A stretch of DNA of 64,000 bases from Haliotis rufescens (GCF_023055435.1 NW_025963857.1:1116001-1180000), one strand, 5' to 3'; shown: positions 19,185 to 64,000, counted from the first letter of the stretch. Notes: generated from the sequence alone by a model not told the origin. A program made the numbers and translations.

Positions 19185-21323
19185 ATGGCAGTGCACCGAC
19201 AATTGACAGACAACTTCTTGACGTGCAGCATCTGCATGGACGTCTTTGATGTTCCCTGTACACTTGTGTGTTATCACACATTTTGTCGGAAATGTGTCGT
19301 TAGCTATACTAAAACCAGACCAGAAGCCATCAGTGCCAAGTCTCTCCTCTGTCCATTCTGTCGAAAGATGACCAAAGTAGCCAACTCAAACAGGCCAGTT
19401 GAAGAGTGGGCACAGGAAGTGAAACCCAGTTTTTTGATTCAGGGTCTCTTGGATTCATTTAATCCCAAGACAAAAGGTATTTCCGAATAGGCTACCAGTG
19501 TTGAACTCATCCTAACATAGCTACGTTGTTCATATCCCGGGTTTGTGAATTCCTCGTATGTACATTGAAAGGTTAAAGGTTATTTCGTAATATTATAGTT
19601 CTTGTGTTGAAAAATAACTGACACATTTGTATGTATACTTGCAGATACCCCGAAGTGCATCCTATGTAGTGATGAAGGAGCGGCACCTCCAGCCACTGCT
19701 TGGTGTGCTGACTGTGACATCAGTCTTTGTGAGGGATGCCAGAAGGCTCACAGACGTATTCCTGCCACTCGTCACCATGACGTATCTGACCTGTCCACAG
19801 AGGTCAAAATCAACCAAAGACGCAAACCATTCTGTAAGCAACATCCAGATCAAAGCATGCAGTTCTACTGCAAAGATTGTAAGAAACTGCAATGTCAATC
19901 CTGTTGCATCCTGTATCACAGAAAGTGTGAGGCAATTCTACCGTTTGAATCTGTTATGCCAGAACTGATCAGCTGTGTTACAGGAGTTAAGGAAAGACTA
20001 GCGTCTCATTTACAAGCAACAGACAGTTTGCTAACAGAATTAGAAACCAAACGGACTGAGGTAATAAAGAACAGAGTCACCGTTCAGTGTCAGATCCGAT
20101 CTACAATCCAGACAGTCACAGAAGCCATAAAGAAGAAGCAACGACAACTCTTGGACCAACTGGATGACGCCACTGAGAAACATATCGAGCGACTGAAAAC
20201 TGAAATGAAGTCTGAAGAGATGGCCAAGCAGATGATAAGTCATCACTCTGTGATGATAGACAGAGCTCTGGAGTCTGGAAGTGAAATGGACATCTATGAG
20301 ATATACCTTTGGTGTGAGTCAGAGGAGTTTCCTACAGTATATGACCCAGATTCAGATATAAAATATGAACTGAGGGAGAAAGTATGTTTTAAGCATGATT
20401 GTGAAGAGATGTGTAACAATATACACGAGGTAAGCTTTGGTGAAATTGATACCATATATGAAGATGTGTTTGATTCTACATCGACATCAGTTCTGCACGA
20501 CACAGTCGACACACAAACAGAAGATGAGACAAGTTTACCTCATGTTTATGACGTGGCAGTGTTCAATGAAGGCGGTACAGACACCATAGTTGTAACTGAT
20601 AATAACAACAAGTGCGTCAAATCCTTCTACACACGCAATACTCAACCCTGTCAGAGTAAGCTCTCTGTTCAGAGCCCCCCTCGGCGGATTGCAAAACTTA
20701 ATGCCCATCACATGGCTGTGACCCTTCCCGAGACAAGGGAGATAATACTAATTGAAGTGACCCCTGACCTTGTTCTCCAATCATACATTTCAACGAGGAA
20801 GAAGTACTTTGGTCTGACGGCCCTGACACCGACTACCCTGGCAGCAGGATCCGGGTCGCCTCCCTGTGTGGACATCCTGGACATGGCGGGGAATGTGTTG
20901 AGGACGCTGAATCGTGTCACAGATGGGGGAACCCTTGTATCAGATCCTTTATTCCTATCTACCACCAGTCAAGGTTACATCCTGGTGTCATGCAGTCATG
21001 CCCCAAGAAGTCATGTGCTATGTATGACACCAAACGGAGATGTTGTGTTTAATTATGTACCCACAGGACAACATCGAGCAATGAATCCATGCGGCATCAC
21101 TGGAACAAACACAGGCGACATGCTTGTTGTTGACGACATGTCAAACAAAGTGGTTCATTTGAGTAGTTCAGGCACATGGTTGAGAGACGTACTGACGTCA
21201 AGCGATGGCATCACTTTCCCTTATGGTCTGTACTTTGATAAGCGGAGGCGTCTGTATGTCACCAACCGCCACTGTGTGATGGTCTACAGGTTCATAACAC
21301 GCACCAAACCAAGATGTACATGA
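19185..21323 (+). CDS. TRIM-A1: intact RING-Bbox1-Bbox2-coiled coil-NHL-like E3 ligase, 656 aa; exons 19185-19476 and 19645-21323
   Basis: C3HC4 RING (CSIC...CYHTFCRKC...CPFC), phase-1 GT-AG intron, B-box1 CILCSDEG...WCADCDISLCEGCQKAHRRIPATRHH, B-box2 CKQHPDQSMQFYCKDCKKLQCQSCCILYH, heptad-rich segment, and propeller blades (PCGITGTNTGDMLVVD; FPYGLYFDKRRRLYVT). No internal stop. The ATG directly follows an acceptor AG, implying a non-coding 5' exon. Confidence 0.93.
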
Positions 21324-21899
21324 AGGTGAATGAACGACTGATGGTTTTGTATAGATCTCCCTTTGAATAGTGTTTCAGTTATATAACGAGATTGAGAAAC
21401 ACAACCAGTGTGAAGCCAATGTAGGCGTGTTTACTCCTACTTCCGGGGTCCGATGACTGACTGTGTTCGATCCTGATGATGAGATGATGATAGATGCACA
21501 GGGGCGCAAGCGCATTGTTATGAAACAATATGTTTACGAAAAAATACTTATTTCTAAGGAAAAATAAAATCATTTTGTTCTGCTGTGTCCCTTTTGTATT
21601 GACATGTGCATACAATCTATTGTATTTACAGTGTTGTTTAATTTTGCAATTTATCGTTCGGTTGTTATGAAGTTATTCGATTACTTCCATTTCTTTTATA
21701 AGGGGATAAAACGAGGCTGACAGGTTGGACGGTAGGTTGATTAACGTCGCACTCAACACTCTTCTAGCTACAAGACAAACAAATCACTAATACCTCACGG
21801 ATCTGTATCCAACGGAGTCAAACTGTCACGTCAAAATGAGAAAAGCTTCATTTCTTCATAACACCTTAATATATTTGTCACTTATTGCTACAGTTTACT

Positions 21900-22112
21900 G
21901 TTTGTTGGTTGGTTGGACGGTTGGTTCATTAACGCCGCACTCAACACTCTTTAAGCTACAAGACGGCGGTCCAGTGGTTAACATCGTGACCATCTATCGA
22001 TTGGAATACGGTGACATGCATCAACCAAGTCAGCAAGCCTGACCACCCGATCCCGTTTGTCGCCTCATACGACAAGCATTGGTTTCTGAAGATTCAAACA
22101 CGGATCTTCCTG
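21900..22112 (-). mobile_element. SINE-like interspersed repeat (also ~35018-35235; degenerate relative ~48255-48450)
   Basis: Minus strand reads gaagatccgtg...cttgtcgtatgaggcgacaaacgggatcgggtggtcaggcttgctgacttggttga...gagtgcggcgttaa with an (aacc)n tail. Confidence 0.65.
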
Positions 22113-62304: not shown

Positions 62305-63585
62305 GGCATTGCCTAAAAGTCGGGCCGGGCCGGGACAAGACGGGCCAAAGTGTTACTTCATTATCGGCGATCATACCTACATACAATTGATGCAACATAC
62401 ACACATGACATAAATGAACAATCACCAAACAAAAAAATGCACCATAAATAAGTAATTCGGAGTAAATCGCTTGAAAACCAGAAAGTGGAGCAGTGTGTAA
62501 GCGTCGCTGATCTTGGTAACATGTAAAAGAGCAATCGTTAAACGAAATAAGATTTGAAACGTATCAAATACTTCTAGCTATCTTGATACAACGTTCCATC
62601 TGTGAGCATAGTGTTTATATTTATAGGAACGTTCTATATATAAGTAAATACCACTTTATAATGTCAACATTTGAATCCATTTGATGATAAATCTGTGCGG
62701 TTTAAGTTGATTTTGAGAGCCCGGGCCAAGTCGGACCGAACACTTCTGACATAGATTTTCTTAAGAAAATACAGTAGAAATACTTCACTTTGAGCACCTT
62801 GTTTTCTTTAAATACGATGTACCGTGACATTATAAAGTGGTATATAGGTAGATATAACACTAATCTATAGATGTAAACACATTTGAAGATACATATGTGT
62901 GTTTAAAGTTGATTTTGACCGGCAGGGCCAAGTCGGACCCAACCAGGCAAAACACTTCTGATAGAGAGAATGAAGAGGGGAAAGGGCTTCACTTTTGAGC
63001 ACCGTGTTTGCTACTGCAATATGAGACACTAAAGTGTTATATAGGTAGATATGATATTATAATTAACCTATAGATGTAAGGTATGTGTTGTAATTTTAGA
63101 AGCGCTTTGACAGTTATTAACACGTATCGTGTCAGTCCTATGACATTCGCGAATATCAACTTGCAGAAAACATCCTGTGTTGGTTTAACATGAATTAGTA
63201 AAGGTTATTTAGGTATGCCAAACACGTTAATGAATGAAAGAAGAGTAGTCAAAACACTGTCATTTCGAATTCCTGCCCAGGACATCACACCCCTGCATGC
63301 TAAGGTCGGTGACAAACCTTCTCATCAAAGTAAAGACACAGTCAAGACACTGACTTTTCGGTATGAACTCTCGGTATGTAGCTATAATTATCAGTTTATT
63401 ACATTGCTGAAGATACATTTTGATTCAAACTCAATTAAATGAGCAAAACTATCCGTTTCTGGACATTTGAGATCTGCCTAGATATGCACGTTTCGTTTTA
63501 TTATTCTGCAATCCATGTTTAGTATTACCCGCTGGCCCGGCCCGGCCCGGCCCGACTTTTCTTGGTCCGACTTTTAGGCAATCCC
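62305..63585. mobile_element. 1281-bp non-autonomous Mutator-like (MULE) DNA transposon
   Basis: TIRs ggcattgcctaaaagtcgg / ccgacttttaggcaatccc with gggcc subterminal repeats. Perfect 9-bp TSD catatttac at 62296-62304 and 63586-63594. The site is empty in units 1-3. Confidence 0.88.
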
Positions 63586-63657
63586 CATATTTACATAAAC
63601 TTTTGTCACTCAGATGGTGACGGATTCTATCAGGTACAATCGTTATACTTCCACATC

Positions 63658-64000
63658 TTAGGTGTTTCTTGTAAATCTGTAGATCTTCACACAGTCATCA
63701 TCGGTGACATACAGGTGCTGACTTTCACACAGGTAGAGACCATACGGAGATGTAATACCATCACGTGACGTCAACACTTCCCTCACAAACGTCCCAGAAG
63801 CGCTGAGTTGAATCACACGATTTGCAAAGTGATCTATAACCAGGATATGTCCTGTGTTGGTTTCAGTGATTCCATGAGGGGAAGGATTCTGCTGTAAAGG
63901 CTGATACCTGAACACAACATCTCCATGAGGCGTCAGACAGAGGACACTGCCAGCTGCGAAATCATCGCAAGACACGAGGATGTTACCCTGCCTGGTGGTA
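63658..64000 (-). CDS. TRIM-B4, C-terminal propeller blades (partial, runs off the window; intactness unknown)
   Basis: Open frame ...NILVSCDDFAAGSVLCLTPHGDVVFRYQPLQQNPSPHGITETNTG...RFTRNT*, colinear with B1-B3. Confidence 0.8.
   Translation of the reverse strand, partial: TTRQGNILVSCDDFAAGSVLCLTPHGDVVFRYQPLQQNPSPHGITETNTGHILVIDHFANRVIQLSASGTFVREVLTSRDGITSPYGLYLCESQHLYVTDDDCVKIYRFTRNT

Follow-up and report, generated by a model that had tools for sequence, protein, structure and literature searches.

Diversifying selection on one face of a predicted NHL propeller in one of two co-duplicated TRIM genes of the abalone Haliotis rufescens

Two TRIM-NHL genes, termed A and B, are repeated side by side in a tandem array of the abalone Haliotis rufescens. 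The question raised by this locus is why the copies of B differ strongly from each other in a set of short segments while the same segments are nearly constant in A. The DNA analysed (termed the window) is a stretch of 64,000 nucleotides (GCF_023055435.1 NW_025963857.1:1116001-1180000), and positions given below are those of the window unless a chromosome or scaffold is named. A preliminary description of the window had interpreted A and B as a genetically linked pair of E3 ubiquitin ligases, B being a variable sensor and A its constant partner. The variability of B, the constancy of A, the location of the variable segments on the top face and the action of selection are borne out by the analysis, but the linked pair as stated is not.

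Self-BLAST and repeat finding in the window show a tandem unit of 12–14 kb, with units starting near 18.6, 31.7, 43.9 and 58.0 kb. A genome search shows that the window holds four of the seven ~13-kb units of an array at 1.134–1.224 Mb of a 32.8-Mb H. rufescens chromosome (termed C79). A second A/B array of seven units, in opposite orientation, is present at 0.60–0.69 Mb of a 1.03-Mb scaffold termed C5 (G000:C5:600000-687000). In each unit of the window gene A is on the plus strand and gene B on the minus strand, and the two are convergent (tail to tail), with a spacing of 2.9 kb between their stop codons. The best protein matches of the window are RefSeq proteins of H. rufescens, and RefSeq gene models cover several of the array copies. 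The earlier statement that A and B are always duplicated together holds for 13 of the 14 units; it fails at copy b627 of C5, where no adjoining A copy was found.

A and B have a common layout of two coding exons. In the RING exon (~292 bp) the ATG directly follows an AG acceptor, and the GT donor is in phase 1; the main exon (~1.67 kb) encodes B-box1, B-box2, a coiled coil and the NHL domain. The main exons of A and B display ~75% DNA identity and 58% protein identity. The sole intact A copy of the window is A1. Its RING exon (coding part, ATG to GT donor) is at positions 19186–19477 of the plus strand, as located by tblastn with the B2 RING exon and by exon alignment; its main exon (19645–21323, plus strand) is open over its full length and encodes 570 aa. 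The sole intact B copy that lies wholly within the window is B2, on the minus strand, with a main exon at 37265–38922, open over its full length (NHL part ~37268–38137), and an open RING exon at 39841–40132 (AG acceptor before the ATG, GTATAAG donor).

The B2 RING exon shows matches to Pfam zf-RING_UBOX (2.6e-9) and zf-C3HC4 (1.9e-8), and the B-boxes of B2 match PF22586 (1.1e-7, an ANCHR-like B-box) and PF00643 (1.4e-8). The match of the coiled coil to PML_CC is weak, as are the Pfam NHL matches (2.3e-6 for B2 and 1.4e-3 for A1). An AlphaFold2 model of B2 residues 265–554, made with 95 family sequences, displays 24 strands in six four-stranded blades, with a predicted local distance difference test score (pLDDT) of 90.6 and a predicted template modelling score (pTM) of 0.89. 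Foldseek gives as best matches to this model the NHL domains of Mei-P26, TRIM2, TRIM3, Thin, Brat and TRIM71, some of them in RNA complexes, and the top 14 matches are all TRIM-type NHL domains (template modelling score 0.71–0.77, E-value 1e-10 to 1e-12, sequence identity 13%–19%). With a RING, B-boxes and a coiled coil (together RBCC) and a six-bladed NHL propeller, A and B belong to the TRIM-NHL proteins.

The strands of each blade (a–d) were labelled from the model alone, and by general propeller convention the d-to-a and b-to-c loops were taken as the top and the a-to-b and c-to-d loops as the bottom. The 12 variable segments of B coincide with all 12 top loops of the six-bladed model. This agrees with the preliminary description, where the segments had been assigned to the d-to-a and b-to-c loops of one (top) face.

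The 12 segments show 5–13 variants among the 14 B copies, and 1–5 variants, nearly all of them singletons, among the 13 A copies. Every loop string that had been quoted for B from the window is present in B1–B4, the quoted A strings are invariant, and the contrast becomes sharper with the larger set of copies. The lengths of the loops are conserved among B copies.

Synonymous divergence in the NHL part is nearly the same in the two genes (dS is 0.073 in B and 0.079 in A). This equality shows that the copies of A and B are of equal age and were duplicated together. The nonsynonymous divergence is 0.095 in B versus 0.028 in A, which gives a dN/dS of 1.30 versus 0.35. The nucleotide divergence of the B NHL part is ~8.7%, compared with ~5%–7% in the adjoining intron and 3′ flank; these values are from pairwise matrices, as a whole-locus alignment inflated the divergence in the indel-rich flanks. 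Because A and B share both age and genomic context, the contrast between them acts as an internal control, and the selection signal is unusually clean. At the level of the family, a comparison of 88 more distant Haliotis paralogues also shows the greatest variability in the top loops (entropy of 1.98 versus 0.92 in the bottom loops).

Structure-defined loop classes were fixed a priori for Nei-Gojobori estimates of omega (dN/dS). In the top loops, pooled omega is 2.2 for all B copies and 3.0 for the intact B copies, compared with 0.62 (all copies) and 0.30 (intact copies) for A. The strands give 0.97 (all) and 1.40 (intact) for B and 0.29 (all) and 0.12 (intact) for A; the bottom loops give 0.47 and 0.25 for B and 0.26 and 0.30 for A, in the same order.

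Site models were fitted with a custom GY94/F3x4 code, which reproduces the M0 log likelihood of IQ-TREE (lnL = -3827.02). For the B NHL part the M0 omega is 1.79, and twice the difference in log likelihood (2dlnL) is 273.6 for M1a/M2a (p = 4e-60), 274.3 for M7/M8 and 275.6 for M8a/M8. The selected class encompasses 16% of the codons, with an omega of ~9.5. The earlier remark that the changes are mostly non-synonymous is thus supported both by the pairwise top-loop values (2.2–3.0) and by this class. The A NHL part gives an M0 omega of 0.47 and an M1a/M2a 2dlnL of 1.9, which is not significant, and the N-terminal half of B gives 0.50 and 3.5, also not significant. The bottom face and the RBCC part of B are constrained; A is constrained throughout and is without a site signal.

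The signal in B withstands control for recombination. With the B NHL part divided into thirds, each on its own tree, 2dlnL is 23.6, 130.7 and 87.7, and on a deliberately wrong tree it is 359.6. A tree-free comparison of six disjoint B pairs shows 174.5 nonsynonymous and 23.5 synonymous differences in the top loops (pN/pS = 2.16, p = 1.4e-4) and a pN/pS of 0.50 in the bottom loops. A dN/dS of 1 or less at the loop codons, which the preliminary description had named as a refuting outcome, is thus not what is found.

Thirty-three B sites have a posterior above 0.95, as naive empirical Bayes values for which the branch lengths were fixed apart from their scale. Of these, 21 are in top loops, 11 are at strand ends 1–3 residues from a top loop, and the remaining one belongs to a bottom loop (top versus bottom, Fisher p = 4e-4). 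On the model 32 of the 33 are therefore in or within three residues of the top loops, and they do not extend over both faces. The proportion of synonymous differences (pS) is 0.090 in the top loops and 0.063–0.071 elsewhere in the B NHL part. A pS that is barely raised indicates selection, and not local hypermutation or import of sequence from distant paralogues. Hypermutation was rejected on this ground. Misalignment as a source of the loop differences was also rejected, as loop lengths are conserved, and so was an assembly artefact.

The conservation of A extends beyond H. rufescens. An A protein of H. cracherodii is 98% identical to A1 in the NHL part and 97% identical in the top loops, and A orthologues in H. 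rubra and H. asinina show 76% and 73% identity, respectively, to the A1 main exon. The A top loops are 70%–72% identical to those of H. rubra and H. asinina and the bottom loops 68%–71%, so that the top does not evolve faster. B copies, with a tenth of that synonymous age, differ by 27%–32% in the top loops and by 7%–10% in the bottom loops. Sampling of more A copies (13, plus the three other species) gave no loop variation comparable to that of B.

B-type proteins are found in H. rufescens and H. cracherodii only, among the protein matches returned. For H. cracherodii a single B is annotated; it falls within the group of H. rufescens copies and has its own loop set. No B-type protein of H. 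rubra or H. asinina was among the matches of a search with B2. The presence of A orthologues in these two species, without a B-type protein among the matches, suggests that A has a role independent of B. FastTree places the B clade as sister to the entire genus-wide A clade, and dS between A and B is 0.72–0.78 throughout the main exon. Thus the paralogy of A and B is old and the amplification is recent.

The trees of the N-terminal part and of the NHL part of B disagree, and recombination is therefore evident. Loop variants recur in a mosaic fashion: B3 and B4 have one 5b-5c loop in common, b601 and b650 have another, and the 4d-5a loop is identical in B1 and b638. The B-box1 segment of B (38620–38922 in B2, 25530–25831 in B1 and 50530–50833 in B3) displays two deep types, ~10 residues apart. 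Its distances are bimodal and its dS is 0.20, versus 0.07 elsewhere. Both types are spread over the copies of the two arrays in a pattern at odds with the NHL tree, and the B of H. cracherodii falls with one of the two types. The B-box1 types are old lineages that have been kept and recombined.

The RING exon shows a different form of exchange. The A1 and B2 RING exons have 93% DNA identity over 289 bp, and the similarity ends at the exon borders. Between A and B, pS is 0.19 in the RING exon versus 0.46–0.49 in the main exon. A GAC codon in the RING exon is common to A2–A4 and all B copies, and A1 has GTT at this place. The sequences point to a partial homogenisation of the RING exon, which may have occurred by gene conversion between A and B or by a family-wide homogenisation of the E3 module.

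Many of the other copies in the window are broken, although the RING exon is open in all seven. The B1 main exon (24179–25831, minus strand) is a pseudogene with two in-frame TAG codons in the B-box region and a 1-codon deletion; its RING exon (26737–27028, minus strand) is open. A2 has an open RING exon (32236–32527, plus strand) and a main exon (32696–34374, plus strand) that is a pseudogene with in-frame TAA, TAG and TGA codons. A3 likewise has an open RING exon (44284–44575, plus strand), and its main exon (44746–46431, plus strand) is a pseudogene with a 6-bp insertion, a +1 frameshift in the coiled coil and a 1-bp deletion near the 3′ end. The B3 main exon (49179–50833, minus strand) is a pseudogene in which an in-frame TAG interrupts the 4d-5a loop and 3 bp are deleted at the acceptor; its RING exon (51739–52030, minus strand) is open.

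The A4 RING exon (58384–58675, plus strand) is open. In it a conserved zinc-ligand Cys (LVCYH motif) is changed to Val, which fits A4 being a dead copy: the main exon (58843–59914, plus strand) is a pseudogene with an internal deletion of ~630 bp, a 1-bp deletion and a TAA stop. Only the 3′ end of the B4 main exon (63661–64000, minus strand, the last 113 codons) is in the window, as the gene extends past the window end. In the genome the full B4 main exon (G000:C79:1179661-1181310) is open and has no stop codons. Over both arrays, the main exon is open in at most six of the 14 B copies (B2, B4, B6, B7 and two on C5) and four of the 14 A copies. The locus is a birth-and-death tandem array and not a set of maintained pairs.

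The next nearest paralogues of A and B in the genome, of which there are hundreds, show 42%–45% identity. Dozens of TRIM-NHL genes with this identity to A/B lie in tandem clusters at 0.05–2.2 Mb and 25.9–32.4 Mb of C79 and at 13.3–25.2 Mb of another chromosome (C101), and the A/B array is nested inside a larger cluster of the TRIM-NHL family. No further open reading frame of note and no Rfam family were found in the repeat unit. Interspersed repeats, with many genome copies at 84%–95% identity, are located just upstream of the array (~13500–17000 and 61–738); these are probably transposable elements.

The left flank of the C79 array was used as a repeat-free DNA query and matched itself and short repeats, with no long match on C5. 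C5 probably represents either another locus or a haplotype that is very divergent. The sole C5 unit that is close to a C79 unit is b679 (2%–2.5% divergence from B5). The C5 copy b615 diverges from B6 by 2.7% upstream and by 9.2% in the NHL part.

There are three assembly gaps in the arrayed part of the window. One (43833–43970) is at the junction of units 2 and 3, with the A3 RING exon ~310 bp downstream of it. On either side of this gap the sequence is collinear with units 1 and 2, in which 107–141 bp bridge the equivalent place. The other two (54268–54493 and 54524–54656) are in the spacer between the B3 RING exon and A4, with flanks collinear with unit 1 and a spacer that exceeds those of the other units in length. 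None of the three gaps touches an exon or is crossed by a reading frame; all of them are intergenic. The spacer after unit 3 (54144–58134) is ~4 kb long, versus 2.3–2.7 kb in units 1 and 2, and has a short inverted repeat (56101–56195/57731–57825). The assembly is least certain in this region.

How are these observations to be explained? That A and B form an obligate heteromeric E3 ligase through their coiled coils, a variable sensor with a constant helper, linked in the manner of paired plant NLRs, appears rather unlikely. Such a pair would account for the presence of A and B together in 13 of 14 units, for a constant A beside a variable B, and for the partial homogenisation of the RING exon. 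It would also give meaning to the head-to-head arrangement of B(n) and A(n+1), ~5.2 kb apart; this, however, is found only across unit borders. The two genes of one unit are tail to tail, and their 5′ regions share the RING exon only and no promoter sequence. The linkage itself is explained by the inclusion of both genes in one repeat unit, so that co-duplication is a trivial consequence. The search with B2 returned no B-type protein from H. rubra or H. asinina, both of which have A orthologues, and ten of the 14 A copies are broken, which argues against one-to-one maintenance. The modelling of A1 with B2 that had been proposed did give a dimer: the predicted B-box2/coiled-coil complex scores 0.62, compared with 0.00 for the best of three controls, with at least 91% contact agreement between runs, a partner pLDDT of at least 81, and antiparallel helices over approximately residues 40–215 of the fragment. 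The mark used for this score is reached by 51 of 78 solved complexes and by two of 108 mismatched pairs, but close cousins pass in ten of 12 cases; the score is blind to family members, and any two close TRIM paralogues are expected to pass. TRIM coiled coils homodimerise, and the result for A1 and B2 therefore indicates compatibility, not partnership. The invariance of A leaves no co-variation to examine. The pairing with a constant partner is unproven, and is less likely than simple co-duplication.

Two further explanations concern the loop differences of B themselves. It is most improbable that they represent decay, either by relaxed constraint in redundant or pseudogenised copies or by conversion patches from distant paralogues. 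Many copies do have stops or frameshifts, recombination is evident, and A and B exchange sequence in the RING exon. Decay, however, should give a neutral omega of ~1 spread evenly, and not ~9.5 on 16% of the codons of one face; the signal is stronger in the intact copies (top-loop omega of 3.0), and the equally broken A copies have no such pattern. Pseudogene decay was rejected for these reasons. Patches from paralogues with 42%–45% identity would raise the local dS, but the top-loop pS is 0.09 compared with ~0.07 elsewhere, and conversion from this source was rejected as well. A non-immune conflict (transposon RNAs, gamete or self/non-self recognition, or intragenomic conflict), in which the NHL face would serve to bind RNA or protein, is unlikely as the cause of B diversification. 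The selection pattern would look the same, and the nearest solved folds are RNA-binding NHL domains (among them RNA complexes of Brat, TRIM71/LIN-41 and Mei-P26). Abalone are, moreover, a classic case of fast-evolving reproductive proteins. Against this, nothing points to a specific non-immune ligand, the charge of the top loops is not consistently basic, and clustered expansion to hundreds of genes resembles the repertoires of immune receptors. In oysters, the loci linked to herpesvirus survival include TRIM genes (PMC9437489).

It is quite probable that B is a diversifying target-recognition receptor, probably directed at pathogens, and that A is a conservative paralogue that was co-duplicated with it. 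Several points weigh against this reading or limit it. More than half of the copies are pseudogenes, and the working repertoire is small. As recombination is evident, the single site calls and the value of omega are approximate; the overall pattern of selection is nevertheless beyond doubt. Which face is top and which is bottom was decided from a predicted model and the general convention for propellers, and not from a solved complex. In canonical TRIM-NHL proteins it is a basic top face that binds RNA. Among the intact B copies the top-loop residues have net charges of -5 to +4, which leaves the class of ligand wide. An arms race acting on B need not be immune. As a reading of the evolutionary record in these sequences, B as a variable sensor is well supported. 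By analogy with other TRIM receptors, an immune and probably antiviral ligand is the most likely driver of its diversification.

The proposed sequence of events with B as such a receptor is as follows. A 13-kb segment with two old paralogous genes for putative TRIM E3 ligases was amplified to 7 + 7 units. B keeps its RING/B-box/coiled-coil module, its propeller framework and its bottom face; positive selection drives apart the 12 loops of the putative ligand-binding top face, and recombination or gene conversion reshuffles loop variants among the B copies. With each intact B copy, one and the same putative ubiquitin-ligase module may then be directed at another form of a ligand that changes fast. 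This ligand would most plausibly be a pathogen (viral) component, as for TRIM5alpha and finTRIM/btr/TRIM35. A would be a conservative paralogue with a fixed ligand, carried along inside the duplicated segment. Mixed A–B dimers are structurally possible, and the evidence does not require them.

The NHL propeller is viewed as a conserved module with which developmental regulators bind RNA. Rapid diversification of TRIM receptors is, to our knowledge, recorded only for those with B30.2 domains and only in vertebrates, and searches of the open-access literature yielded no account of hypervariable NHL domains or of the A/B family in abalone. In the present case, within an expanded family of a mollusc, an NHL propeller has one face that behaves as a hypervariable binding site would. 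Should its ligands be components of pathogens, B would represent a new class of invertebrate intracellular immune receptor, with a bearing on abalone disease (herpesvirus, withering syndrome) and on recognition diversity in animals without adaptive immunity. A bolder proposal, which is unlikely, is that abalone possess an intracellular, germline-encoded repertoire of NHL propellers for recognition, with 12 top-face loops that resemble complementarity-determining regions and recombine among the members of an array, and that at this locus variable B subunits join a constant A through the coiled coil as sensor and helper ligases and form an animal counterpart of paired NLRs. What is new is that these putative receptors are NHL-based and molluscan; diversifying multigene TRIM receptors are an already known kind.

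A comparison with known systems shows where this family stands. Plant NLR pairs such as RGA4/RGA5 and RRS1/RPS4 are head to head, share a promoter, and depend on each other genetically and physically. A and B resemble them in being two linked paralogues, one variable and one conserved. The differences are that A and B are tail to tail within the unit and share no regulatory 5′ sequence, that A also occurs in species from which no B-type protein was recovered, and that most A copies of the arrays are broken.

The resemblance to the canonical TRIM-NHL proteins (TRIM2, TRIM3, TRIM71/LIN-41, Brat, Mei-P26, Thin) is in the order of domains and in the structural matches to the B2 propeller, which are the best ones. 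Unlike these proteins, A and B have no filamin domain, and identity is 13%–19%. In the solved complexes of Brat and LIN-41 RNA is located on the top face. The canonical proteins are single-copy, slow-evolving developmental regulators, whereas B is present in many copies, and its hypervariable top face varies in charge.

Among fungi, NLRs with WD40 propellers (HET-E, HET-D and related proteins of Podospora) show diversifying selection at a few positions per blade, on one face (PMC4986451, PMC12222747). B is similar to HET-E and HET-D in that one propeller face is diversified and variants are reshuffled by recombination. The propeller is NHL in B and not WD40, the module attached to it is a RING E3 and not a NACHT/HET effector, and the shuffling takes place between gene copies in B but between repeats within a gene in the fungal NLRs.

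The closest likeness in mode of evolution is to TRIM5alpha and the fish multigene families finTRIM (ftr), btr and TRIM35/hltr, in which positive selection is concentrated in loops of the ligand-binding surface (PMC3137616). As in these families, an E3 module made up of a RING, a B-box and a coiled coil is joined to a C-terminal recognition domain; as in finTRIM-type families, there are tandem multi-copy arrays with birth and death of copies; and as in TRIM5alpha and finTRIM, selection on B is localised to the predicted ligand-binding surface of the C-terminal domain. The B recognition domain is, however, a six-bladed NHL propeller and not B30.2/PRY-SPRY, the host is a gastropod, and all 12 top-face loops are involved, compared with 4–6 variable loops. 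B thus appears to work like the diversifying group of TRIM proteins, outside the B30.2 class.

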